Assembly: GCF_902713615.1 (NCBI RefSeq)
Contig: NW_024055744.1
Coordinates: 2,461,936-2,525,935 of the forward strand
Origin: Scyliorhinus canicula
Taxonomy: Eukaryota
Length of the DNA stretch: 64,000 nucleotides
Reading direction: 5' to 3'
The position numbers were made by a program, and so were the translations under genes. The notes beneath the pieces were generated by a model, which was not told the origin of the DNA, did no database searches, and was given only the letters and a program-made list of their open reading frames with translations. This document shows, piece after piece, positions 5,940 through 60,228 of this stretch (position 1 is its first letter; each line of letters starts with the position of its first letter).

Positions 5940-6445
5940 GGTGCTGGAGGGTGTGCAGAGGAGATCCATTACGTTAATCCCAGAGCTGAAGGGGTTGGAT
6001 TATGAGGAGAGGTTGAGTAGACTGGGACTGTACTCGTTGGAATTTAGAAGGATGAGGGGGGATCTTATAGAAACATTTAAAATTATGAAGGGAATAGATA
6101 GGATAGATGCGGGCAGGTTGTTTCCACTGGCGGGTGAAAGCAGAACTAGGGGACATAGCCTCAAAATAAGGGGAAGTAGATTTAGGACTGAGTTTAGGAG
6201 AAACCTCTTCACCCAAAGAGTTGTGAATCTATAGAATTCCTTGCCCAGTGAAGCAGTAGAGGCTCCTTCATTAAATGTTTTTAAGGTAAAGATAGATAGT
6301 TTTTTGAAGGATAAAGGGATTAAGGGTTATGGTGTTCGGGCCGGAAAGTTGAGCTCAGTCCATAAAAGATCAGCCATGATCTCATTGAATGGCGGAGCAG
6401 TCTCGAGGGGCCAGATGGCCTACTCCTGCTCCTAGTTCTTATGTT
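5940..6445 (+). mobile_element. CR1 3' end
   Basis: YEERLSRLGLYSLEFRRMRGDLIETFKI..TRGHSLK, followed by a 3' UTR. Confidence 0.9.
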
Positions 6446-6479
6446 CGGCTCAAAGGTTTGTCCATTCCAGATAGAGTCA

Positions 6480-13248: not shown

Positions 13249-14067
13249 TCACAGAAGGTCCAATGAAACATGTAATCCCGTCTCATGTTGAGAAGTGGAC
13301 GGCGTCTCCCCTGTATGAACTCGCTGATGTCTCCTCAGGTTGGATAATTGAGTAAATACTTTCCCACAACGAGAGCAGGTGAATGGCGTCTCCCCAGTGT
13401 GAACTCGCTGGTGTGTCTGCAGGTTGGATAACTGAGTAAATCCTCTGCCACACTGAGAGCAGGTGAGTGGCCTCTCCCCAGTGTGAATTCGCTGGTGAAT
13501 CCGCAGATGGAATAACCGAGTGAATCCCTTCCCACACGGAGAGCAGGTGAATGGCCTCTCCCCAGTGTGAATTCGCTGATGTTTCCGCAGGGTGGATGAA
13601 TCAATAAATCCCTTCCCACACTGAAAGCAGGTGAATGGCCTTTCCCCAGTGTGAACACGTTTGTGTCCCCGCAGGGTGGATAAGTGTGCAAATCCTTTCC
13701 CACACTGAGAGCAGGTGAATGGCCTCTCCCCAGTGTGAACTCGCTGGTGTGACTGCAGGGTGGATAGCCGAGTGAATCCCTTCAAACACTGAGAGCAGGT
13801 GAATGGTTTCTCCCCAGTGTGAACTCGCTGATGTATCTGCAAGGTGGTTGAATCACTGAATCGCTTCTCACACTGAGAGCAGGTGAATGGCCTCTCCCCT
13901 GTGTGAACTCGCTGGTGTGTCTGCAGATTGAATAACTGAGTGAATCCCTTCCCGCACTTGGAGCAGGTGAACGGCCTGTCCCCAGTGTGACTGCGTCGAT
14001 GAATCTCCAGCTTAGATGGGAATCTAAATCCCTTCCCACAGTCCTCACATTTCCATGGTTTCTCCAT
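13249..14067 (-). CDS. C2H2 zinc-finger protein ZNF-A, 9 intact fingers plus a decayed 10th, no effector domain
   Basis: ATG at 14067 (MEKPWKC), TGE(R/K)PF linkers, open frame; upstream acceptor ttttacag|G with exon start at 14415. Confidence 0.85.
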
Positions 14068-14584
14068 GTTGTGTGTCTCCAGGTTGTACAATCAGTTGAA
14101 GCCTTGTCCGCAGATACAACACGAGTATGGTCTCTCCCAGCTGTGAATGTTGTTATGTTTTTCAGGCTGTGTAACTGGTTAAAGCTCTTTCCACAGTCAG
14201 TTCACAGGAACACTTTCACTCGGGTGTCTGTTGTGTGGGTCTTGGTGCTTTTCCAGTCACACTGATGGTTGAAATCTTTAGCTGACAGTTCGGAAAAAGG
14301 TTTCACCTTCTAGATTCAAAGGTTGGAGATATTCAGGTTCCAAGGAATCGAGTAACTGTCAGATTGAGACGTGACGATTGAGATTTCTGTCTGTAATTCT
14401 TCCTCATCTAATATCCTGTAAAAACAATTTACAAAATTCATCACTGTCAGTACAGGATAGAAACTCAGAACAGACAATTCTAGTTTCTATGTGACATTTT
14501 TTCCTCTCCCTTATTCCCTGAAAGCTGTAAATCTCCATCCCACACACTCTCCCTCCATTCTCATTCTGGTGTATCGCAGTTGAG

Positions 14585-18982: not shown

Positions 18983-20074
18983 TCACTTGTGAACTCGCTG
19001 GTGTGTCAGCAAGTGGGATGACTGAGTAAATCCCTTTCCACAGACATTACAGGTGAATGACCTCTCCCCAGTGTGAATGCGATGATGTTTCAGAAGATAA
19101 GATAAATGAGAAAATTCCTTCCCACATATGGAGCAAGTGAACGGCCTCTCCCCACTGTAAACTCTCTGGTGTGTCAGCAGGTTGGATGACTGACTGAATC
19201 CCTTCTCACACACAGAGCAGGTGAATGGCCTCTCCCCAGTGTGAACTCGCTGGTGATTCAATAGGTTGGATGAACGAGTGAATCCCTTCCCACACACTGA
19301 GCAAGTGAACGGTCTCTGCTCACTGTGAACCTGCTGATGTGTCAGAAGGTTGTATGAACGTGTGAATCCCTTCCCACATTCAGAGCAGGTGAACGGTCTA
19401 TCCCCTGTATGAAGTTGCTGGTGTATCAGAAGGTTGGATGAATTAATGAATCCTTTCCCACAGTCAGAGCAGGTGAATGGCCTCTCCCCAGTGTGAATTC
19501 TCTGGTGGTTCAGTAGGGCAGATGGACGGCTGAATCCTTTCCCACACACAGAGCAGGTGAATGGTCTCTCCCCAGTGTGAGCATATTGGTGTGTTAGTAA
19601 ATCCTTTTTGTTTTTAAAGCTCTTCTCACAGTCAGGACAATTAAAAAATGTGTTATCAGAGTGAACAGGTTGATGTGTCTGCAGGTGGGATGACTGAATG
19701 AATCCTTTCCCACACAGGGAGCAGGAGAACGGTCTCTCTCCAGTGTGAATAAGTTGACGTGTCAGCAGATCCTTTTTACATTTAAAACTCTTTTCACAGT
19801 CAGGACATATAAATGGTCTCTTATCAATGTGAACAAGCTGATGAGTCACAATGTGGGATGACCGAGTGAATCCCTTCCCACACCAGGGCAGGTGAATGGC
19901 CTCTCCTCAGTGTGAACTCGTTGGTGTGTCAGAAGGTTGTATGAATGGGTGAATCCCTACCCACAAATGGAGCAGATGAACGGTTTCTCCCCAGTGTGAC
20001 TGCGACGATGAACTTCCCGTTGTGATGGGTAACTGAATCCCTTCCCAGTCCGCACATTTCCACACTTTCTCCAT
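18983..20074 (-). pseudogene. ZNF-B, probable pseudogene with about 13 finger units; the last 10 are in one ORF
   Basis: ATG at 20074 followed by a 2-nt deletion in finger 1, TAG at about 19957 and a further frameshift; 18983..19849 stays open; acceptor at 20400. Confidence 0.75.
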
Positions 20075-20694
20075 GGTGAGGGGTCTTTATGTCTCTCCTG
20101 GTTGAAGCTTTGTCCACACACAAATAAGCGTTTAATTTCTCCCTGCAGTGAATGATGTGATACTCTTTTTGAGGCTGTGTAACTGGTTAAAACTCTCTCC
20201 ACAGTCAGTGGACTGGAAAACTCTCAATGGGGGTGGGTCTCGGTGCTTTTGCAGTCACACTGCTGAAACAGAACAAACCCTTCTCCTTCCAAATTCAAAG
20301 ATTGAAGATATTGAGCTCTTAATGAATTGAGTGGCTGTCAGATTTCGATATGATGTTTGGTTTGAGTTTTCTGTTGGCCAATCCTCCACTTCCAATATCC
20401 TGTAAAAGGAGTTTACAAAACCCATCACTGTCAGTGGAGCATATAAATTCTGAACAGACAATTCTAGTTTCTCTGGAACATTTTTCCCTCTCTTGTTCCC
20501 CCAAAGCTGTAAATCCCCGTCCCACACACTCTCCGTCCTCCCTGGGCTGAAATCCAAACCCATCTCACCATCTCTTTCCTCCACTCCCAATTTTCTCCCT
20601 CCCTCTCCTCTGCCTGGGTTCAGTTCTCCAGCTCCTGTCTGCAGACTGACAATAAAACCAATGGGTCTTATTGGGGGGTTTGGGTTCTGACCAT

Positions 20695-22583: not shown

Positions 22584-22656
22584 CGCCCAAAGTGGGTCTT
22601 GAACCCACGGCCCTGGGATTAAGAGTCCCATGCTCTACCGACTGAGCTAGCTGGGC
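22584..22656 (-). tRNA. tRNA-Lys(CTT)-like gene, possibly a pseudogene
   Basis: 73 nt, GCCCAGCTAGCTCAGTCGGTAGAGCATGGGACTCTTAATCCCAGGGCCGTGGGTTCAAGACCCACTTTGGGCG; anticodon CTT; C7:T66 mismatch; no T4 terminator nearby. Confidence 0.85.
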
Positions 22657-26225: not shown

Positions 26226-27480
26226 CCTCACCAGCTCGGCTCCCACATCCTGGTAAATCCTCACTCGGAAAACTGAGTGAATCCCTTCCCACACTCCGAA
26301 CAGGTGAATGGTCTGTCGCTGGTGTGACTGTGGAGATGAGTCCCCAGCTCACATGGGGACTTGAATCCTGCCCCACAGTCCCCACATGAAAAATGAAATG
26401 AAAATCGCTTATTGTCTCGAATAGGCTTCAAATGAAGTTACTGTGAAAAGCCCCTAGTCGCCACATTCTGGCACCTGTTCGGGGAGGCTGGTACGGAATT
26501 GAACCGTGCTGCTAGCCTGCCTTGGTCTGCTTTCAAAGCCAGCTATTTAGCCCTGTGCTAAACCAGCCCCTGTTTCAGCATGCTGCTGGTGTCCTTGTCC
26601 CCCTCCACGTTTGACGATCAATTGAATAATAAATAATAAACTTTATTAGTGTCACAAAAAGGCTTACATTAACACTGCAATGGTTACTGAGAAAATCCCT
26701 CAGTCACTGCACTCCGGCGCCTGTTCGGATACTCGGAGGGAGAATTCAGAATGTTGGAATGTGGTGACAAGGGGCTTTTCACAGTAACTTCATTGAAGCC
26801 TACTCGTGACAATAAGCGATTTTCATTTCATTTTTTTTTCATTTCAAATCACCAAATATGCACGATTTTTGGGACTTGTGGGAGGAAACAGGAACACCCG
26901 GAGGAATCCCACACAGACACTGGGAGAACGTGCAGACTCCGCACAGACAGTGACCCAAATCGGGAATCGAACCCGAGTCCCTGGTGCTGAGAATCAACAG
27001 TGTTACCCGCTGTGCTGTTGTGGCGCCCTTGTCCCCACAGAGAGCATGTGTACGGTCTCTCCCCGCTCTGAATGGAATGGTGTTTTTTCAGACTGTGTAA
27101 TTGGTTAAAGCTCTTTCCACAGTCAGTTCACTGAAACACTCTCACTCGAGTCGAGTGTGTGTGTATCGGGTTTTCTTACAGTCACACTGATCTTGGAAAA
27201 TCTTTCCCTATGGACGGACCAGACAAACGTTTCTTCTTCCACATTCACAGGCCAATGATATTCAGGTCCTGATGAATGGACTGACTCTATTAAATCTTGT
27301 TGTGAAGTTTGATTTGAGTTTCTATCTGTAAAGCCTCCCCTTCCAACCCCCTATAAAAGGAGTTTACAAAAGCCATCACCGTCAGTCCAGGATAGAAATT
27401 CTGAACAGACAATTCTAGTTTCTCTGGAACATTATTCCTCTCTTGTTCCCCCATAGCTGTAAATCCCAGTCCCACACACT
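26225..27480 (-). pseudogene. ZNF pseudogene (acceptor, leader, first fingers), fragmented by SINEs and truncated by L1
   Basis: Acceptor at about 27352, leader at 27030-27350, finger remnants at 26225-26390. Confidence 0.7.
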
Positions 27481-29221
27481 CTCCCTCCTCCCTGGGCTGA
27501 AATCCAAACCCATCTGCACCGTCTCTTTCTTTTTAAAAATTTAGTGTACCCAATTCATTTTTTCCAATTAAGGGGCAATTTAGCGTGGCCAATCCACCTA
27601 CCCTGCACATCTATGGGTTGTGGGGAGAAACCCACGCAAACGCGGGGAGAATGTGCAAACTGCACACGGACAGTGACCCAGAGCTGGGATCGAACCTGGG
27701 ACCTCGGCGCCATGAGGCAGTAGTGCTAACTACTGTGCCACCATGCTGCCCTTCTGCACCATTTCTTCCCTCCACTCCCAGTTTTCTCCCTCCCTCTCCT
27801 CTGCCTGAGTTCAGTTCTCCAGCTCCTGGCTGCAGACTGACAATAAAATCAAAGGGTCTTATTGGGGGTTTGGGGCCCCCAGTGGGTGTTTGTGAATCCT
27901 CCCCGCCCACCTGCCAGGGTTTCCTTCCTTGCCATCGGAGAGACCTCTGATTTATTGTTCTCCCTTGTGGTCCAGGTCTCTCCCTCAGCTTGACATATTG
28001 ATTTGTCTGGCGAAAAGGATGGTCTCTTTCCTAATGTTCACAATTAAAGGGGTGGGTTCCCATGGAGATGTTTGACATTTCAGGGGACATTAAATTAATA
28101 GTGGACAGAGATATGTCTGGTGTTGTTACATGGTACAGATTAGATATATTATTTATGGTTCTGTAATAAAATATATTTATTATGATTTCTCTTCTTTTAA
28201 TATAAGATTGCAGCTCCGTTATAGATTTCCAGTCATCTCTTCCCTCAGAGGGTTGTTAATCTCTGGATTTCTCTTCCACAGGGACCAGTTGTATCTGGGG
28301 GTCATTGAATATATTGAAGCACAAGTTAGACAGATATTTTATTGACAATGGAGTTAAGAGTTATGGGGAACAGGTAGGAAAATAGAGTGAAAGCTGAGAT
28401 GAGGTGGGATCTCTTCACTCGAGGATGTGGTGAAGCTTTGGAATTCTCTATCCCAGAGGAATGTGGAGCCTCGGTCATCAGGGATGTTCAAGACAAATAT
28501 TGATAGGTTTCTAGATATTGAGGATATCGAGGGATATGGGGACCGTGTGGGGAGAATGGTGCTGAGGTAGATCGGCCAAGGATCTCATTGAATGGTTAGC
28601 ATTGAATGGCCTTGCTCCTAATAATCTCTGTGTCCTGGTCAGGAAGCAGTGAGCTGAGCTTGGATCTGTCAATCAACATGAATCAGCACCTTCAGGAGAA
28701 TTGGGAGGGTGAATATTAGATGCAGCAGAGTGAGAATGGAGGGAGATTGTGTGTGATGGAGATTTACAGCTTTTGGAGAACAATAGAGGAAATAATATTT
28801 CATAGAAACTAGAATTGTCTTCTGAGTTTTTATCGTGTACTAACAATGATGATTTTTGCAAATTGTTTTTAAAGGATATTGGAAGAGGAGGAATTATAGA
28901 CAGAAATCTCAAAGGTCATGTCTCAATGTGACAAACTCAGTCGATTCCTTTTGATCTGAATATCATTGGTGAGAAGGAGAAATGTTTGTCCAATCTGTCG
29001 GCTTCCAAAGATTTTAAGCACGAAAAGCACCGAGACTCACACAACACACACCCGAGTGAGAGTGTTCCAGTGAACTGACTGTGGAAAGAGCTTAAACCAG
29101 TTACACAGCCTGAAACAAACATCACACCATTCACACTGAGGAGAGACAGTGCACATATTCTGTGTGTAGACAAGGCTTCCACTGATTGTCCAATCTGGAG
29201 AGACATGAGGAGACCCAAAAC

Positions 29222-29836
29222 ATGGAGAAACCATGGAAATGTGGGGACTGTGGGAAGGGATACAGATTCCCATCTGAGCTGGTGACTCATCGACGCAATC
29301 ACACTGGGGAGAGGCCATTCACCTGCTCTGTGTGTGGGAAGGGATTCACTCGGTTAACCATCCTCAAGTCACACCAGCGAGTTCACACTGTGGAGAAACC
29401 ATTCATCTGCTCTCAGTGTGGGAAGGGATTCCAATACTTAACCAACCTACGGATCCATCAGCGAATTCACACTGGTGCGCGCCCGTTCACGTGCTCTCAG
29501 TGTGGGAAGGGATTCACTCAGTCATCCAGTCTGCAGAGACATCAGAAAGTTCACACTGGGGAGAGGCCATTCGCCTGTTCTGTGTGTGGGAAGGGATTCA
29601 CAGAATCATCCAGCCTGCAGAAACATCGGCGAGTTCACACTGGGGAGAGGCCATTTACTTGCTCCCTCTGTGGGAATGGATTCACACGGTTATCCAGCCT
29701 GCAGAAACATCGGCGAGTTCACACTGGCGAGAGGCCATTCACTTGCTCTCAGTGTGGGAAGGGATTTACACAGTTATTCAGTCTGCAGCGACATCAGCGA
29801 GTCCACGCTGAGGAGAGGCCATTCACCTGCTCTTAG
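29222..29836 (+). CDS. C2H2 zinc-finger protein ZNF-C, 7 intact fingers, truncated
   Basis: ATG at 29222 (MEKPWKC); TAG inside finger 8; the rest of the array is replaced by a CR1 tail at about 29850; acceptor at 28874. Confidence 0.7.
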   Translation: MEKPWKCGDCGKGYRFPSELVTHRRNHTGERPFTCSVCGKGFTRLTILKSHQRVHTVEKPFICSQCGKGFQYLTNLRIHQRIHTGARPFTCSQCGKGFTQSSSLQRHQKVHTGERPFACSVCGKGFTESSSLQKHRRVHTGERPFTCSLCGNGFTRLSSLQKHRRVHTGERPFTCSQCGKGFTQLFSLQRHQRVHAEERPFTCS

Positions 29837-44463: not shown

Positions 44464-45666
44464 ATGGAAGGAAAAAGCATTGTTCACAGTGGGGAGAAAC
44501 CGTACATGATTTGTTTGTGTGGACGAGGATTCGCTCTATCAGACCTCGCAAGCCACAAATGCAGACACACCGAGGAGAAACCGTGGAAATGTGCGGACTG
44601 TGGGAAAGGATTCACTTCCCCCTCCAAGCTGGAAACTCATCGACGCAGTCACACTGGGGAGAGACCCTTCACCTGCTCCAAGTGTGGGAAGGGATTCACT
44701 CAGTCATCCACTTTGTCCACACACCAGCGAGTTCACACTGGGGAGAGACCATTCACCTGCTCCAAGTGTGGGAAGGGATTTTCTTTTTCAACCCACCTGC
44801 TGAGTCACCAGCGAGTTCACACTGATGAGAGACCGTTTCATTGTCCAGACTGCGGGATGTGCTATAAAAGTTCTGGGGAACTGATTCGCCATCAACGTGT
44901 TCACACTGACGAGAGACCGTTTAGGTGCTCTCCCTGCGGGACTGGGTTCAGACAATCATCTGACCTCACTGTGCATCAGCAAAGTCACACTGGGGAGAGG
45001 CCATTCACCTGCTCAGAGTGTGGGAAGAGATTCACTCGATCATCTGACTTGCAGAGGCACCAGCGAATTCACACTGGGGAGAGGCCATTCAGCTGCTCCA
45101 AGTGTGAGAAAAGATTCTTGCGATCATCTGACCTGGAGAAGCACCAACGAATTCACTCTGCGAAGAGAACATTCACCTGCTCCAAGTGTGGGGAAGGATT
45201 CACCCAGTCATCCGACCTGCTAAGTCACCAGCGAATTCACACTGATGAAAGACCGTTTCAATGTCCAGACTGCGGGAAGAGCTATAAGAGTTCTGGGGAA
45301 CTGATGCATCATCAACATGTTCACACTGATGAGAGACCGTTTAGGTGCTCTCATTGTGGGACTGGTTTCAGGCGATCATCTCACCTCACTGTACATCAAC
45401 GAATTCACACTGGGGAGAGGCCATTCACCTGCTCCTGGTGTGGGAAGGGATTCACTCAGTCCTTCAACCTGCAGAAGCACCAGCGAATTCACACTGGGGA
45501 GAGGCCATTCACCTGCTCCCAGTGTGGGAAGCGATTCACTGAGTCATCTGCCCTGCAGAAGCACCAGCGAGTTCACACTGGGGAGAGACCGTTCACCTGC
45601 TCCAATTGTGGGAAGGGATTCGGCACTTCATCCCACCTCCTGAGACACCAACAGTGCCACAAATAA
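44464..45666 (+). CDS. C2H2 zinc-finger protein ZNF-D, 13 intact fingers plus 1 degenerate N-terminal finger
   Basis: Acceptor tttcacag at 44355; first ATG in the exon at 44464 ([13 protein letters not shown]); open frame to TAA. Confidence 0.88.
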
Positions 45667-47110: not shown

Positions 47111-47369
47111 GTTACACCTGTGGCGGGAGAAACAGATTTGGAAACACTTTGTGGATCCGCAAACCCATCACCATCATTGTCAGCTCCCTGGTTTGCAGCT
47201 GCGGAGCTTCTCCCTCCCTCCCGGGAACAGGCCCAGGTTAACGGGCACCATCCTGCTTCACACACTGGAGGATGGTTCACATCACAGGAGGGGGGAGGGG
47301 GGATAATAAATAAGAGCTGACACTTTGCACTCAAATCAATGAGGAATCTGATCTCTGGCAAGGAAGGGA

Positions 47370-47700
47370 ACCCGGGCAGGTGGGCGGGAGGATTCACAAA
47401 CACTCGCTGGAGGCCCCAAACCCCCCAATAAGACCCATTGGTTTTATTGTCAGTCTGCAGACAGGAGCTGGATAACTGAACCCAGGCAGAGGAGAGGGAG
47501 GGAGAAAACTGGGAGTGGAGGAAAGAAATGGTGCAGATGGGTTTGGATTTCAGCCCAGGGAGGAGGGAGAGTGTGTGGGACGGGGATTTACAGCTTCGGG
47601 GAATGGAGAGGAAAAAATGTTCCCGAGAAACTAGAATTGTCTGTTCAGAATTTATATGCTCCACTGACAGTGATGATGTTTGTAAATTCCTTTTACAGGA
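47370..47700 (+). other. Conserved ZNF cassette upstream module and splice acceptor
   Basis: aataagacccattggttttattgtcagtctgcagacaggagctg..gggtttggatttcagcccaggg..ttttacag|G (47698); same module inverted at 20400-20690 and 27350-27930. Confidence 0.75.
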
Positions 47701-48298
47701 TATTAGAAAGGAGGATTTACAGATGTGAGACTGAAACCAAATGTCATCTGACAGTCACTCAATTCATCAGGACCTGAAAATCCTCAGACTTTGAATGTTG
47801 AAGGAGAAACGTTTGTCTCTTCTGCCTGTGAGAAACAACTTTAAATACCAGTGTGACTGGAAAGATATCGGGACCCACACAACACACACCCGAGTGTGTG
47901 CAGTTTCCAAGAGCCGGTGCAGACTCGATGGGCTGAGTGGCCTCCTTCTGCACTGTAAATTCTATGATAATCTATGATTTTCTCGAGAGATGCCTTTTAT
48001 TTTCGGGAGTTAATTTTTGGTTTCCAGGATCTCTTTTTCCACTCTCACTGACTCCTTTATTAAGTGATGTAGTCACGTAATCACATTACTGTCTGTATTT
48101 GTGTTGAATATTTTTTGAGTTTACTTCTTTTTGTAGATAAGAAAGCACAAAGTTCAGTGAATTGACTGCGGAAAGAGCTTCAACCAGTTACACAGCCTGA
48201 AGAAACTTCACAGCGAGAAGAAACTGTACACGTGTCCTGTATGTGGAGAAGACTTCAACTGATCATCCAACTTGGAGAGACACAAGGACACAGGCACC

Positions 48299-49222
48299 AT
48301 GGAGAAACCATGGAAATGTGAGGACTGTGGGAAGGGATTCAGTTATCCTTCCCTGCTGGAAAACCATCGGCGCAGTCACACTGGGGAGAGGCTTTTCACC
48401 TGCTCTGTGTGTGGGGAGGGATTCATTCAGTCATCTGGCCTTTGGTCTCACCAGCGGATTGACACTGAGGAAAAGCTATTCATCTGCACCTCCTGTGGAA
48501 AGAGGTTCAGGCATTCTTCAGCACTCACTGTACATCAACGCACTCACACTGGGGAGAAGCCGTTCGTCTGCTCCGAGTGTGGGAAGGGATTTACTCAGTC
48601 TTTTCACCTGCTGTCTCACCAGCGTGTTCATAGAGGTGAGAGGCCGTTCACCTGCTCTGTGTGTGGGAAGGGATTCACTGGATCATCCCACTTACTGTCA
48701 CACCAGCGTGTTCACATTAAGGAGAAACCATTCAGCTGTACTTCCTGTGGAAAGAGTTTCAGACAGGCATCCTCCCTCATTGCACACCAGCGGCTCCATA
48801 CTGGGGAAAGACCGTTTACTTGCTTTGTGTGTGGGAAGGGATTCACAGTTTTACCCATCCTTCTGAGACACCAGCGAATTCACACTGAAGAGAAACCATT
48901 CAGCTGCACGTCCTGTGGAAAGAGTTTCAGGCAGTCATCTAACCTCACTGCCCACCAACGCACTCACACTGCGGAGAGACCGTTCACATGCTCAGTGTGT
49001 GGGAAGGGATTCAATCGGTCGTCCAACCTCACTGCTCACCAGCGCGTTCACACTGGGGAGAAACCGTTTACCTGCTCAGTGTGTGGGAAGGGATTCGCAA
49101 AGTCTTTCAACTTGCTGGCACACCAACGCACGCACACTAAGAGACCATTCAACTGCTGTGTGTGTGGGAAGGGATTCACTCAGTCACGATGCCTCCAGAG
49201 ACATCAGCAAGTTCATCAATGA
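48299..49222 (+). CDS. C2H2 zinc-finger protein ZNF-E, 11 finger units (10 intact)
   Basis: gcaccATGG Kozak context at 48299 (MEKPWKC); open frame to TGA. Confidence 0.88.
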   Translation: MEKPWKCEDCGKGFSYPSLLENHRRSHTGERLFTCSVCGEGFIQSSGLWSHQRIDTEEKLFICTSCGKRFRHSSALTVHQRTHTGEKPFVCSECGKGFTQSFHLLSHQRVHRGERPFTCSVCGKGFTGSSHLLSHQRVHIKEKPFSCTSCGKSFRQASSLIAHQRLHTGERPFTCFVCGKGFTVLPILLRHQRIHTEEKPFSCTSCGKSFRQSSNLTAHQRTHTAERPFTCSVCGKGFNRSSNLTAHQRVHTGEKPFTCSVCGKGFAKSFNLLAHQRTHTKRPFNCCVCGKGFTQSRCLQRHQQVHQ

Positions 49223-49539
49223 CTGCAGGGATTGGATTCTGCTGTTGTTGCTGTTGTTTAGTGTTGACGGTCTGACAATATTTTGTTCCTGCTGGTGTGA
49301 ACCCCTATAACTGCTGGAACTTAATATGCTGAAAATGTCATTTATTGTGGGGGCTACAATGTCTATTTCCATCTGTGATCTTTGCTCTTAATTCAAGAAC
49401 TCTCAGCAGAAACCTGTTTAGAATAAATTTATGAACTTTTGCTTCAATTCTAAACCAATCTTTGATGTAAAATCTACAATTCAGCGTCTGAAAGATCCAA
49501 CTGCAGAGCTCAAAATATATTTTTTCAATGGCTCTTCTT

Positions 49540-50470
49540 GAGATTTTCTCGAGAGCTGCTTTGATGATTTTAGGGAGTTAATTTTTGGTTTCCAGGGTCT
49601 CCTTTTCCACTCTCACTAACTCCTTTATTAAGTGATGTAGTCACGTAATCACATTACCGTCTGTATTTGTGTTGAGTATTTTTTGAGTTTGCTTCTTTTA
49701 GTAGATAAGATAGCATAAATATCAAAGACTGTGTACATATTAAATGTTTTAAATTGGAATCTATAAATAAGATGTTTTGGTTAATTTATTTGAAAAGGAA
49801 ACCCCCTTACTCCATTTCCAAAATGAGAATTCAAACTATTTGACTCAAGGTAACTGAACAGGTGCCGAGTGTTTATTGGATCAGACGGTGGAGCAGGAAA
49901 AACTCACCCGATTCTGATCTTCATTGTGTGGATTTACATTCAAAACCCATCGATAACCTCACTACACCCACTGAGATCAGCTACTCTTCCTTTGGATGCT
50001 CTCATGATAGAACTTTTGTGGTCCTTTTGAGGATGAAATCATGCTTCACACCTGGTTCTGAAATACTATCACTCTGTGTGTAAGGTATTCCTGGGATAAA
50101 ACATAGTTCTACATCTTGTCACCTAACACAAATTCATATCGTCACCCGAGTCCCAGATTTAAATGTGATTGTCCAGTCCAGAAAACATATAGAAATTGAC
50201 CCCGTTAAATCTGATTCAACAAGCTACAAGAGATAGTTTGTGTTGTTCACAATGATGACAGTATCAACCTTCTCCCTAACCTAGCCTAACCCTTCCGCTG
50301 AACAGGGAGACTCCTTGTTCAGATGGTGACATTTCCTGTCTGCCCAGTTAGAGAATCATAGAATTTACAGTGCAGAAGGGAGACCATTTGGTCCATTGCG
50401 TCTGTACTGGCCCTTGGAAAGAGCACTCTACTTAAGCCCACACTTCCACCCCATCCCAGTAACCCCACCT
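49540..50470 (+). repeat. Local segmental duplication, copy 1
   Basis: Near-identical to 58933-59830; its first 175 bp or so also occur at 47977-48150. Confidence 0.9.
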
Positions 50471-50688
50471 ACCCTTTTTTTGGACACTAAGGGCAATTTA
50501 TCATGGCCGATGCACCTAACCTGTACATCTTTGGACTGTGGGAGGAAACCAGAGCACCCAGAGGAAACCCACGCAGACACGGGGAGAACGTGCAAACTCC
50601 GCACAGACAGTGACCCAAGTCGGGAATCAAACCTGGGATCCTGGAGTTGTGAAGTGACAGCGCTAACCACTTTGCTACCATGCAGCCC
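50352..50688 (-). mobile_element. HE1-like SINE
   Basis: Full-length copy. Confidence 0.8.
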
Positions 50689-52896: not shown

Positions 52897-55471
52897 CATA
52901 GAACATAGAACATAGAACGATACAGCGCAGTACAGGCCCTTCGGCCCTCGATGTTGCACCGACATGGAAAAAAATCTAAAGGCCATCTAACCTACACTAT
53001 GCCCTTATCATCCATATGCTTATCCAATAAATTTTTAAATGCCCTCAATGTTGGCGAGTTCACTACTGTTGCAGGTAGGGCATTCCACGGCCTCACCACT
53101 CTTTGCGTAAAAAACCCACCTCTGACCTCTGTCCTATATCTATTACCCCTCAATTTAAGGCTATGTCCCCTCGTGCTAGCCACCTCCATCCGCGGGAGAA
53201 GGCTCTCGCTGTCCACCCTATCTAACCCTCTGATCATTTTGTATGCCTCTATTAAGTCACCTCTTAACCTTCTTCTCTCTAACGAAAACAACCTCAAGTC
53301 CATCAGCCTTTCCTCATAAGATTTTCCCTCCATACCAGGCAACATCCTGGTAAATCTCCTCTGCACCCGTTCCAAAGCTTCCACGTCCTTCCTATAATGA
53401 GGCGACCAGAACTGTACGCAATACTCCAAATGCGGCCGTACTAGAGTTTTGTACAACTGCAACATGACCTCATGGCTCCGGAACTCAATCCCTCTACCAA
53501 TAAAGGCCAACACACCATAGGCCTTCTTCACAACCCTACCAACCTGGGTGGCAACTTTCAGGGATCTATGTACATGGACACCGAGATCCCTCTGCTCATC
53601 CACACTGCCAAGAATTTTACCATTAGCCAAATATTCCACATTTCTGTTATTCTTTCCAAAGTGAATCACCTCACACTTCTCCACATTAAACTCCATTTGC
53701 CACCTCTCAGCCCAGCTCTGCAGCTTATCTATGTCCCTCTGTAACCTGCAACATCCTTCCGCACTGTCTACAACTCCACCGACTTTAGTGTCGTCTGCAA
53801 ATTTACTCACCCATCCTTCTGCGCCCTCCTCTAGGTCATTTATAAAAATGACAAACAGCAACGGCCCCAGAACAGATCCTTGTGGTACGCCACTCGTAAC
53901 TGAACTCCATTCTGAACATTTCCCATCAACTACCACTCTCTGTCTTCTTTCAACTAGCCAATTTCTGATCCACATCTCTAAATCACCCTCAATCCCCAGC
54001 CTTCGTATTTTTTGCAATAGCCGACCGTGGGGAACCTTATCAAACGCTTTACTGAAATCCATATACACCACATCAACTGCTCTACCCTCGTCTACCTGTT
54101 CAGTCACCTTCTCAAAGAACTCGATAAGGTTTGTGAGGCATGACCTACCCTTCACAAAACCATGCTGACTGTCCCTAATCATATTATTCCTATCTAGATG
54201 ATTATAAATCGTATCTTTTATAATCCTCTCCAAGACTTTACCCACCACAGACGTTAGGCTCACCGGCCTATAGTTACCGGGGTTATCTCTACTCCCCTTC
54301 TTGAACAAAGGGACCACATTTGCTATCCTCCAGTCCTCTGGCACTATTCCTGTAGCCAATGATGACCTAAAAATCAAAGCCAAAGGCTCAGCAATCTCTT
54401 CCCTGGCTTCCCAGAGAATCCTAGGATAAATCCCATCCGGCCCCGGGGACTTATCTATTTTCACCTTGTCCAGAATTGCCAACACTTCTTCCCTACGCAC
54501 CTCAATGCCATCTATTCTAATAGCCTGGGTCTCAGCATTCTCCTCCACAATATTATCTTTTTCTTGAGTGAATACTGACGAAAAGTATTCATTTAGTATC
54601 TCGCTTATCTCCTCAGCCTCCACACACAACTTCCCACCACTGTCCTTGACTGGCCCTACTCTTACCCTAGTCATTCTTTTATTCCTGACATACCTATAGA
54701 AAGCTTTTGGGTTTTCCTTGATCCTACCTGCCAAAGACTTCTCATGTCCCCTCCTTGCTCGTCTCAGCTCTCTCTTTAGATCCTTCCTCGCTTCCTTGTA
54801 ACTATCAAGCGCCCCAACTGAAACTTCATGCCTCATCTTCACATAGGCCTCCTTCTTCCTCTTAACAAGAGATTCCACTTCTTTGGTAAACCACGGTTCC
54901 CTCGCTCGACCCCTTCCTCCCTGCCTGACTGGTACGTACTTATCAAGAACATGCAATAGCTGTTCCTTGAACAAGCTCCACATATCCAGTGTGCCCAACC
55001 CTTGCAGCCTACTTCTCCAACCAACACATCCTAAGTCATGTCTAATGGCATCATAATTGCCCTTCCCCCAGCTATAACTCTTGCCCTGCGGGGTATACTT
55101 ATCCCTTTCCATCACTAACGTAAAGGTCACCGAATTGTGGTCACTGTTTCCAAAGTGCTCACCTACCTCCAGATCTAACACCTGGCCTGGTTCATTACCC
55201 AAAACCAAATCCAATGTGGCCTCGCCTCTTGTTGGCCTGTCAACATATTGTGTCAGGAAACCCTCCTGCACACATTGTACAAAGAATGACCCATCTAATG
55301 TACTCGAACTATATCTTTTCCAGTCAATATTTGGAAAGTTAAAGTCTCCCATAACAACTACCCTGTTACTTTCGCTCTTTTCCAGAATCATCTTCGCCAT
55401 CCTTTCCTCTACATCCCTAGAACTATTAGGTGGCCTATAGAAAACTCCCAACAGGGTGACCTCTCCTTTCC
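52897..55471 (-). mobile_element. Young 5'-truncated CR1 with uninterrupted ORF2 remainder, TSD tacccaa
   Basis: tacccaa at 52890-52896 and 55472-55478; nearly identical to 7466-10015; open frame from mid-endonuclease to the stop at 52992. Confidence 0.95.
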
Positions 55472-55484
55472 TACCCAAGACAAC

Positions 55485-56160
55485 CATCAAACCTTTGAGT
55501 CCCAATGTCTTATTGTTGAGGCAGAGATGGAAAAGAAGAGAAAGACATTCTGCTTTTCAGTTCTCACTACCTCTTGGAACATCCTCCTCCATGTGTCTAA
55601 AGATCTACGACCATGCCCAGTCATATCAAGAACCACCTCAGAAACTCACAACCTTGAGTAAAGGCCATCCTGAAATTGAGGTATGGCTGATGACAATGAG
55701 GGTAAAGTGCAGCAGGGAGTATGAGCTGTCATCCTGGCCCAGGGAGCAGGAGGGGAGAATGTAATGAATTTCTATCCTGGACTGACAAGGATGAATTTTG
55801 AAAACTCCTTTTACAGGTGGTTAGAAAGGGAGGATTTACACAAAGCAAACTCAAACCAGCAATAGGTTTATTTTTTTCCTGAATTTCGATTTTGGACTGA
55901 CAGATGGCTTTTGTTACTTTCATTTTCAGGGTATTAGAAAAGGATTTGCAGGCAGGAAACATAAAGAAAACCTGACATCAAACTCTGACAGCATCACTCG
56001 ATTCATCAGGTCCTGGATATTATCGCACTTTCAGTGTAAGAATTGAGTTCCAAGACATTACCACTCACTGTAAAATGTCTTCCTCATATCGCCCTGTAGA
56101 TCTTGCTCCAAATCTTAAATCTGTGTCCTGAAATCCTTTTTACAATCAGCTAGTAGGAGC
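55485..56160 (+). other. ZNF cassette 5' region of ZNF-F (RTE relic, doubled acceptor)
   Basis: Acceptors at 55816 and 55929; colinear with 24180-24870. Confidence 0.6.
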
Positions 56161-58611: not shown

Positions 58612-58932
58612 TTTGAATCAAACCTGTTGGACTTTAACCTGGTGTTGTAAGAGTTTCTTTGAAGGCCTCCCTCAAGCTGTCTGCCGTCTCCACCTCTCAG
58701 CACTGATTAAAGATACTTGTTAAAATCTCCCTCTCCATTCAAGATTGTATCCATTTAATGAAATGAAAATCGCTTATTGTCACGAGTAGGCTTCAATGAA
58801 GTTACTGTGAAAAGCCCCTAGTCGCCACATTCCGGCGCCTGTCCGGGGAGGCTGGTACGGGAATTGAACCGTGCTGCTTGGCCAGCCGTGGTCTGTTTTA
58901 AAAGCCAGCAATTTATCCCTGTGTGCTAACCT

Positions 58933-60228
58933 GATTTTCAGGAGTTAAATTTAGGTTTCCAGGATCTTCTTTTCCACTCTGACACCTTTATTAAGTGATG
59001 TAGTCACGTAATCACATTACCGTCTGTATTTGTGTTGAGTATTTTTTGAGTTTACTTATTTTTGTGGATAAGATAGCACAAATACTAAAGACTGTACATA
59101 TTAAATCTTTTAAATTGGAATCTGTAAATAAGATGTTTTTGTTAATTTATTTAAAAAGGAAAACCCCCTTACTCCATTTCCAAAATGAGAATTCGAACTA
59201 TTTGACTCAAGGTAACTGAACAGGTGCCGAGTGTTTATTGGATCAGACGGTGGAGCAGGAAAAACTCACCCGATTCTGATCTTCATTGTGTGGATTTACA
59301 TTCAAAACCCATCGATAACCTCACTACACCCACTGAGATCAGCTACTCTTCCTTTGGATGATCTCATGATAGAACTTTTGTGGTCCTTTTGAGGATGAAA
59401 TCATGCTTCACACCTGGTTCTGAAATACTATCACTCTGGGTGTAAGGTATTCCTGGGATAAAACATAGTTCTACATCTTGTCACCTAACACAAATTCATA
59501 TCGTCACCCGAGTCCCAGATTTAAATGTGATTGTCCAGTCCAGAAAACATATAGAAATTGACCCCGTTAAATCTGATTCAACAAGCTACAAGAGATAGTT
59601 TGTGTTGTTCACAATGATGACAGTATCAACCTTCTCCCTAACCTAGCCTAACCCTTCTGCTGACCAGGGAGACTCCTTGTTCAGATGGTGACATTTCCTG
59701 TCTGCCCAGTTAGAGAATCATAGAATTTACAGTGCAGAAGGGAGACCATTTGGTCCATTGCGTCTGTACTGGCCCTTGGAAAGAGCACTCTACTTAAGCC
59801 CACACTTCCACCCCATCCCAGTAACGCCACCTCCCCGGGGAGGCTGCTCCCTAAGAGTCTGCTGCCCTTGTCTTTCACCTGAGGAAGGAGCAGTGCTGCA
59901 AAAGCTAGTGATTTGAATCAAACCTGTTGGACTTTAACCTGGTGTTGTAAGAGTTTCTTTGAAGGCCTCCCTCAAGCTGTCTGCCGTCTCCACCTCTCAG
60001 CACTGATTAAAGATACTTGTTAAAATCTCCCTCTCCATTCAAGATTGTATCCATTTAATGAAATGAAAATCGCTTATTGTCACGAGTAGGCTTCAATGAA
60101 GTTACTGTGAAAAGCCCCTAGTCGCCACATTCCGGCGCCTGTCCGGGGAGGCTGGTACGGGAATCGAACCGTGCTGCTGGCCTGCTTTAAAAGCCAGCGA
60201 TTTAGCTGAGTGAGCTAAACCAGCCCCT
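58933..60228 (+). repeat. Local segmental duplication, copy 2 (mosaic)
   Basis: 58933-59830 matches 49565-50470; 59844-59950 matches 51060-51168; 59912-60180 matches 58612-58880. Confidence 0.9.

Follow-up and report, generated by a model that had tools for sequence, protein, structure and literature searches.

Organisation of the locus

The stretch of DNA analysed here (the window) is 64 kb of the Scyliorhinus canicula genome (64,000 nucleotides of contig NW_024055744.1, positions 2,461,936 to 2,525,935), and the subject is a subfamily of zinc-finger (ZNF) genes, represented here chiefly by copy E, in which an open reading frame (ORF) is preceded by a 5′ leader containing three dead fingers. 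The GC content is about 45-50%, and the sequence holds debris of long interspersed nuclear element (LINE) reverse transcriptases, repeats resembling short interspersed nuclear elements (SINEs) and C2H2 zinc-finger exons on both strands. Tandem C-x2-C-x12-H-x3-H units with TGEKP-like linkers, as are characteristic of Krueppel-type C2H2 poly-zinc-finger genes, are present, and Pfam zf-C2H2 recognises 10 stretches in copy E, 9 in A and 13 in D. Pfam searches of the window frames returned finger families only, with no KRAB, SCAN or BTB domain, and no upstream coding exon was identified. The window holds a tandem cluster of such shark genes in birth-and-death evolution. The parts of copy E are as follows.

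47637-47698 (+): conserved intron tail and proposed 3′ splice site, with a CTGAC branch-point-like motif, a pyrimidine run and ttttacag
47699-47796 (+): older 5′ exon part, common to the intact-type copies D and F in alignments; Kimura two-parameter distance (K80) between copies 0.27-0.49
47797-47799 (+): ancestral start position, GTT in E, ATG in D and F
47809-47896 (+): dead finger 1, with TGA at 47854-47856
47897-48154 (+): E-specific repeat insertion of 258 bp, separating dead finger 1 from dead finger 2
48155-48226 (+): dead finger 2 and linker, with TGA 48158-48160 in place of the first Cys and a 9-nt deletion that takes out the His pair
48182-48201 (+): near-invariant 20-mer within dead finger 2, identical in 7 of 10 copies
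48227-48298 (+): dead finger 3; TGA 48260-48262 stands where the ancestor had an Arg codon (F has AGA)
48299-49222 (+): ORF of copy E from the linker ATG, 307 codons and 11 fingers, the second without its last His; 10 Pfam zf-C2H2 stretches
49223-49550 (+): probable 3′ untranslated region (UTR) of E; RNA depth falls to about zero past ~49600

The dead-leader type is represented in the window by copies A, B, C and E and by the remnants R1, R17, R27 and R42, while D and F are of the intact type. In D-type genes the counterpart of dead finger 3 is the live first finger.

13249-14415 (-): copy A, with an uninterrupted 348-nt dead leader and a 272-codon frame of 9 fingers, the last of them frameshifted
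18983-20460 (-): copy B, a pseudogene; its leader is broken, and so are the first three fingers that follow the ATG
28875-29836 (+): copy C, with a dead leader that has an AAG acceptor and has lost the first TGA by deletion; 7 fingers, then a stop inside finger 8
44464-45663: copy D, intact type, with a live first finger, a TEEKPWKC linker and 13 Pfam zf-C2H2 stretches
~57.0-58.2 kb: copy F, intact type, with a TAG after finger 1 and more stops beyond

Dead fingers, shared stop codons and the linker ATG

The copies can be aligned far past their coding parts, intron tails included, and the alignability of the copies as paralogs over this length rules out chance as the source of their common TGA pattern. 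The intron tail of E aligns in all copies, in D and in three sequences from elsewhere (L001, L002 and L005, described below), and in Heterodontus francisci an NCBI gene model (P0124) employs the corresponding acceptor of a copy nearby. Over the 300 nt that lie 5′ of the proposed E acceptor, the match is 87-92% to the counterparts in B and R27 and 69-77% to those in A and C. Near the acceptor there is also a sharp mosaic boundary: in the region 5′ of it (47356-47700; 20273-20684 on the minus strand; 27749-27934 on the minus strand) E, B and R27 differ by a distance K of 0.07-0.12, against 0.29-0.47 in their leaders, which suggests either gene conversion or constraint on a promoter or exon lying upstream.

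The original prediction placed TGA codons at equivalent positions of several copies, and a base-by-base check found every one of them where it had been given: 47854, 48158 and 48260 in E, 14257, 14202 and 14092 (minus strand) in A, 29071 and 29183 in C, and 17864 and 17916 in the 17.8-kb remnant. In the 27-kb remnant they lie at 27130-27128 and near 27184. The TGAs of different copies occupy the same alignment columns. The first (TGA1) falls in the helix of finger 1 (..QTSV*LEKH..) and is kept in 11 of the 12 alignable copies; C lacks it through an 11-nt deletion. Copy B has TCC at the second site and a deletion across the third, and the remnant at 1035-1215 has TGC at the third. The second TGA does replace the first Cys of a CxxC pair, as had been proposed, for TGC stands there in a Mustelus asterias copy (L001) and in a Mustelus-like contig (L005), and the third corresponds to AGA (Arg) in copy F at ~57.3 kb, again as predicted. 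The stretch between the second and third TGAs scores 22.9 bits, narrowly below the Pfam zf-C2H2 cut-off of 25.2. Finger periodicity is thus recognisable in the leader, yet it is broken by stops and frameshifts and lies outside the reading frame, as expected of fossil fingers. The leader peptide quoted in the original prediction fits the consensus of the family; it is not that of E itself, where finger 1 is frameshifted, carries an extra TAA and is followed by the insertion.

The ATG that opens the E frame indeed lies in a former TGEKP linker in a strong Kozak context (ACCATGG or AACATGG). At this position F has ACT GGG GAG AAA (TGEK) and D has ACC GAG GAG AAA (TEEK). The upstream old start is also lost in the dead-leader copies: the ATG found in D (LNMEGKS) and F (KMKGKS) is replaced by GTT in E, CTA in A, TTG in B and GTG in both R27 and R42. 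Judged from the sequence, translation would begin at the linker AUG. The three TGAs, the loss of the upstream start and the linker ATG are common to at least six copies of the window.

It could be argued that the TGAs are decoded, by readthrough or as selenocysteine, with the three fingers thereby remaining in the protein. Opposite the second TGA, L001 and L005 have the Cys codon TGC, and in E the second and third TGAs share one frame with the ATG, which would both suit such decoding. Against this, indels of 1, 2, 5, 8 and 11 nt give the copies different frames, E has TAG and TAA in frame ahead of the second TGA, no ATG opens that frame, the first and third TGAs align with residues other than Cys, and the dead fingers lack any excess of third-position change. 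A search for a selenocysteine insertion sequence (SECIS), which had been suggested along with the prediction, was made with Rfam and found none, either in the whole window at the gathering threshold or in 47600-49700, which includes the 3′ UTR of E, at E<=1. As the frames differ between copies and there is no in-frame start before the second TGA in E, readthrough is excluded by the analysis, and decoding of either kind, rejected here on the broken frames of every copy, the missing start and the missing SECIS, is hardly credible.

The same state in other sharks

A search with a protein word from the first live finger gave matches in sharks; a whole-protein query gave only generic ZNFs ranked by finger number. 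Annotated proteins that start exactly with MEKPWKC are found in Pristiophorus japonicus, M. asterias and Chiloscyllium punctatum. The M. asterias copy (L001) has the same acceptor, leader, first and third TGAs and linker ATG, with TGC at the second site, and the Mustelus-like metagenome contig (L005) is in the same state. H. francisci (L002) has the acceptor, the linker ATG and each of the three TGAs, and there are two more truncated leader copies with a finger 1 stretch, one of which has TGA and the other AGA at the first site. The region upstream of the C. punctatum gene (L003) is GC-rich with poly-C and without fossil fingers. D-type relatives keep the ATG and a live finger 3, and Cetorhinus maximus has an annotated D-type protein (P0131) that begins MEGKS. 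A 23-mer of the ATG region had no match in a scan of metagenome contigs, and an unrelated eukaryotic metagenome scaffold (L006) was left out of the comparisons. Among repeats paired between the window and L001-L003, identity does not go above 87%.

In a tree of the leaders the species interleave: M. asterias and L005 group with A and C (support 0.97), R42 groups with H. francisci copies (0.94), and the full H. francisci copy lies near the centre on a very short branch. The original prediction of one inactivation before the family expanded is borne out by these data, since the same derived states are common to at least six window copies, M. asterias, the Mustelus-like contig and H. francisci, and the interleaved tree indicates that the inactivation was single and old. 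On this sequence comparison the founder event is therefore older than the split of at least two shark orders, and the duplications had begun before that split.

The H. francisci model P0124 reads ..LNVEGES, followed directly by LERDKDTRTMEKPWKC, that is, it splices around the dead fingers. It is chimeric (L002 3001-27322), being composed of the first 100 nt of a truncated leader copy (~6350-6460) and the dead finger 3 tail of a copy 20 kb downstream, and it skips the stop codons by joining pieces of two leader copies. Models that splice around the stops in this way are probably artefacts. In the annotated MEKPWKC protein of M. asterias (P0122; L001 3560-4340) finger 7 runs into a LINE reverse-transcriptase fragment, and the array resumes past this insertion, where L001 4343-5154 matches A.

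Evolution of the leader

If the dead fingers had been retained as a functional leader, as the original prediction suggested with a translational control element in mind, slow evolution would be expected, and evolution at the intronic neutral rate was named there as an outcome that would refute the idea. Pairwise K80 is 0.27-0.49 in the older 5′ part, 0.18-0.54 in dead finger 1 and 0.19-0.38 in dead fingers 2 and 3, as compared with 0.07-0.31 in the intron tail and 0.09-0.23 in the first live finger. Parsimony on an eight-copy tree gives 0.94 changes per column for the leader against 0.78 for the intron tail, and the leader therefore does evolve at a rate of the neutral kind. On the same tree, the first live finger shows 0.32, 0.64 and 0.59 changes per column at codon positions 1, 2 and 3, about half the leader rate.

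An alignment check of indel tolerance and codon-position bias, as had been proposed, gave many non-triplet indels and a flat profile. The leader indels measure 1, 2, 5, 8, 9, 11, 12, 22 and 37 nt, to which the insertion in E is added, while the arrays of A, C and E have no indels except one codon. The changes in the dead fingers are spread evenly over the former codon positions, with no codon-position bias. No upstream ATG (uATG) or upstream ORF (uORF) is shared among the copies: E has 9 uATGs, or 4 if the insertion is left out, A has 1 and C has 4. At a CpG, ACG has changed to ATG more than once, namely in C, L001 and L002 only. The leaders of A and H. francisci show no folding beyond that of shuffled sequences (z +0.31 and +1.13), the finger 2 region has no compensatory pair and a consensus fold of -2.6 kcal/mol, and Rfam gave no match to the leader region, neither with the whole window at the gathering threshold nor with 47600-49700 at E<=1. 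Retention of the leader as a translational control element is for the most part not supported: the rate is at or above that of the intron tail and of third positions, indels break the frame, and no conserved uORF or excess folding was found. The leader mostly appears to drift freely, in a neutral-like manner, with one island of 20 nt as the exception. Slow substitution has been reported in cartilaginous fishes (PMC8455134), and this is sufficient to explain that the fossils have stayed legible.

A conserved island in dead finger 2

The exception is the 20-mer at 48182-48201 in dead finger 2, whose identical copies come from at least three sources. On the eight-copy tree it has undergone 3 changes where 18.7 are expected. 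When 13 sequences are used and the rate is that of non-CpG sites, 21.8 changes would be expected and 5 are seen (P 1.8e-5, or ~0.006 when corrected for 345 windows), no column permutation matches its conservation, and the significance is lost when third-position rates serve as the null. The 20-mer has no other occurrence in the window. Ten of its bases are complementary to the stretch bearing the first TGA, and the two form a helix in the predicted folds of the A and H. francisci leaders; this helix shows no covariation, and the chance of coincidence, estimated post hoc, is ~0.1. By these comparisons the island appears unexpectedly conserved.

One may speculate that the core of dead finger 2, possibly paired with the TGA1 stretch, now serves the truncated genes as an exapted cis-acting element, which we think rather improbable. 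If so, it could be an RNA helix or a binding site for a protein or small RNA that tunes translation or stability, and a part of the fossil would have been kept by selection across shark orders while the remainder decays; a new mechanism would come only from this small island, and only if it is functional. A wider form of the argument, slightly less probable still, would explain the retention of the dead fingers by a role of the leader, or of its core, in controlling the translation or RNA fate of the truncated genes. The near-invariance of the block, the retention of TGA1 in nearly all alignable copies and the complementarity between the two would agree with this. The remaining leader, however, drifts at or above the intron rate with indels, and the architecture is not preserved either: R27 has a large deletion, C has lost the TGA1 stretch and E has taken up 258 bp. 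Nor do the absence of shared uATGs, of excess folding, of covariation and of any Rfam match, as reported above, speak for control by the leader, and fingers 1 and 2 are wholly missing in D-type genes and in the C. punctatum MEKPWKC gene. The dependence of the island's significance on the choice of null and the post-hoc nature of the helix count in the same direction.

The leader in RNA

Two oligo-dT stranded RNA runs were used. Most of their reads have only 95-99% identity and continue into dissimilar sequence. The polyA+ reads have the sense orientation of the plus-strand genes. Reads that join 47896 directly to 48155 number 4 and 43 in the two runs (47 in total); the ends of the joint are TG..TT, and it is not a splice. 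The joint shows that an insertion-free form, an allele or a twin copy, is transcribed with dead fingers 1 and 2 contiguous. Furthermore, in 224 paralog reads, which match from position 48299 on, a dead finger 3 tail resembling that of C is fused to ATGGAGAAACC, about 20 reference-matching reads of run X24 cross 48292, and sense polyA+ reads cover the E ORF. The dead fingers are thus transcribed in polyA+ RNA, continuous with the ATG, as the original prediction of a leader present in RNA beside the start codon would have it, although unspliced RNA and cross-mapping may contribute to these reads. The E acceptor at 47698 itself is placed by sequence features.

Arrays behind the linker ATG

The finger arrays differ from the leader in how they change. 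A and C have 115 differences in 612 nt (204 codons) and no indel, against nine gap events in ~490 nt of intron and leader. Their 60 amino-acid differences pile up on helix positions, and none touches C, C, L, H, H or the linker P. For M. asterias the ratio of non-synonymous to synonymous divergence (dN/dS) is 0.44 with A and 0.45 with C, with dS about equal to the leader distance; the value of 0.44 reflects ~54 non-synonymous and 36 synonymous differences, where 68 and 22 are expected. Eight copies extend as far as the linker ATG, and every one of them has it. The same measure for E against A or C was dropped as a test of recent constraint: dS is 0.85-1.0, far above the leader distance, and the similarity of the arrays is almost as high out of register as in register.

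We consider it probable that the subfamily arose by an ancient loss of the start codon together with three fingers, that an ATG in a linker took over, that the fossils have since drifted as a transcribed leader, and that some of the arrays behind this ATG are under selection. Several observations weigh against this reading. On the RNA side, cross-mapping from paralogs is heavy (71% and 65% of placed reads in the two runs continue as unlike sequence), no joint onto 47699 is found among the joints listed, so that the proposed splice acceptor of E is not confirmed, and sense polyA+ reads lie over the supposed intron (47200-47599) and the mosaic region 5′ of the acceptor at a depth equal to that of the coding part. 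Most of the copies examined are broken beyond the leader, namely B, C, R17, R27, R42, R1 and F in the window, and those of other sharks are damaged as well, with a frameshift after finger 2 in H. francisci, the LINE insertion in finger 7 of M. asterias and decayed frames in C. punctatum. The stop inside finger 8 of C and the frameshifted last finger of A likewise count against live genes, and E combines its nine uATGs with a finger that lacks the last His. Copy B retains at 18983-19849 (minus strand) a 288-codon array of ten mostly canonical fingers with no ATG in frame and with three frameshifted fingers upstream; an open array alone is for this reason weak evidence of function, and B illustrates that in the dogfish genome an array may go on looking intact long after its death. 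Aligned in register, the arrays of E and A show scarcely more similarity than when shifted out of register, from which it follows that dN/dS for pairs with E reflects old history or exchange between arrays. An exact look-up of five window frames in a protein collection gave no match.

These points would be accommodated if the whole dead-leader subfamily consisted of pseudogenes, the founder having been dead before segmental duplication multiplied it. In that case the open arrays and the linker ATG would be leftovers, their intact look being due to slow mutation in sharks and to exchange with live arrays. Such an explanation is unlikely in our view, yet it has to be taken more seriously than the others discussed here. 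It agrees with the visible breakage of most copies, with the long open array of B, with the many uATGs of E and the absence of the frames from the protein collection, and with the near-even distribution of differences over the three codon positions (28, 45 and 42 between A and C; 25, 29 and 34 between M. asterias and A). It does not agree with the complete lack of indels over 204-272 array codons when the leaders of the same copies have about one per 55 nt, nor with zinc ligands that are unchanged among 60 amino-acid differences, a dN/dS of 0.44 that is clearly below 1, an ATG kept in every copy reaching it and the persistence of the family in at least two shark orders. Judged from their frames, A and E may be live.

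Proposed history and relation to known systems

In the history that we favour, the founder of one subfamily would have had its upstream ATG changed to a non-start codon and its first three fingers destroyed, through a TGA in the helix of finger 1, a TGA in place of the TGC or TGT for the first Cys of finger 2 and another in place of an Arg codon in finger 3. A change of TGEKPWKC to TMEKPWKC would have put a Met codon, in good Kozak context, into the linker before the fourth finger, where it could have served as the first usable start. Later duplicates would all have inherited the dead-leader state, with the dead fingers still transcribed in the leader, and the fossils would persist through the slow change of shark DNA and not through need. 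The array behind the ATG would have kept evolving under selection in at least some lineages, many copies having since died.

Birth-and-death evolution by tandem duplication and pseudogenisation is standard in C2H2-ZNF clusters. Like these, the shark cluster has tandem copies flanked by intron sequence and numerous pseudogenes, and its DNA-contact residues change fast while the zinc ligands are conserved; it departs from them in having an N-terminally truncated founder, and no KRAB or other effector exon was identified by Pfam on its frames. Relocation of the start codon to a downstream in-frame AUG after an N-terminal nonsense mutation is a general mechanism. The linker ATG conforms to it as the first in-frame AUG past the last stop, in strong context and at the head of the remaining frame, features that are known here from sequence.

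Fossil fingers in transcribed ZNF genes have been described previously. The 3′ UTR of human ZNF252 contains eleven complete and degenerate fingers after the stop codon, and degenerate fingers within arrays, on which there is a review for KRAB-ZNFs, are also documented (PMC2865497). Like the degenerate fingers of vertebrate poly-ZNF genes (PMC2865497), those of the shark are units outside the frame of a transcribed ZNF gene that arose from stops in a duplicating cluster and drift with no obvious function. Unlike fossils of the ZNF252 type, they lie 5′ and not in a spacer or 3′ UTR, the loss of fingers is paired with the loss of the old start and with a Met start in a linker, and the state is common to a whole subfamily across shark orders and not confined to one gene. 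The shark case is thus the 5′ counterpart of known fossil fingers, with subfamily-wide fossils in the leader and a start born in a linker. It is a tidy and fairly ordinary instance of gene-family turnover that opens no new mechanism. Its interest lies in offering a multi-species, dated example of a ZNF gene that would have lost its N-terminal fingers and survived through a Met codon that arose in a finger linker, and in showing over what spans of time dead coding sequence can still be read in shark genomes, which evolve slowly. In the annotation of shark assemblies it matters that frames starting with MEKPWKC are preceded by fossil fingers.

Other features of the window

The insertion in copy E consists of a SINE-like piece (47898-47974) and a 176-bp fragment (47976-48151). 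The fragment is 92% identical to 49542-49719 and 58934-59082 and corresponds to the start of a repeat of about 900 bp that lies directly downstream of both E and F (49542-50474 and 58932-59836, 96% identical over 911 bp).

Long open frames of LINE reverse transcriptases are found at three places.

52992-55505 (-): 837 codons
38847-40724 (+): 625 codons
7551-9421 (-): 351 and 299 codons

Two of the long LINE frames are almost the same in sequence, a sign that elements inside the ZNF cluster may have been active recently. Finally, a tRNA-like sequence at 22584-22656 on the minus strand (60.6 bits), the sole Rfam match in the window at the gathering threshold, is possibly the head of a tRNA-derived SINE.

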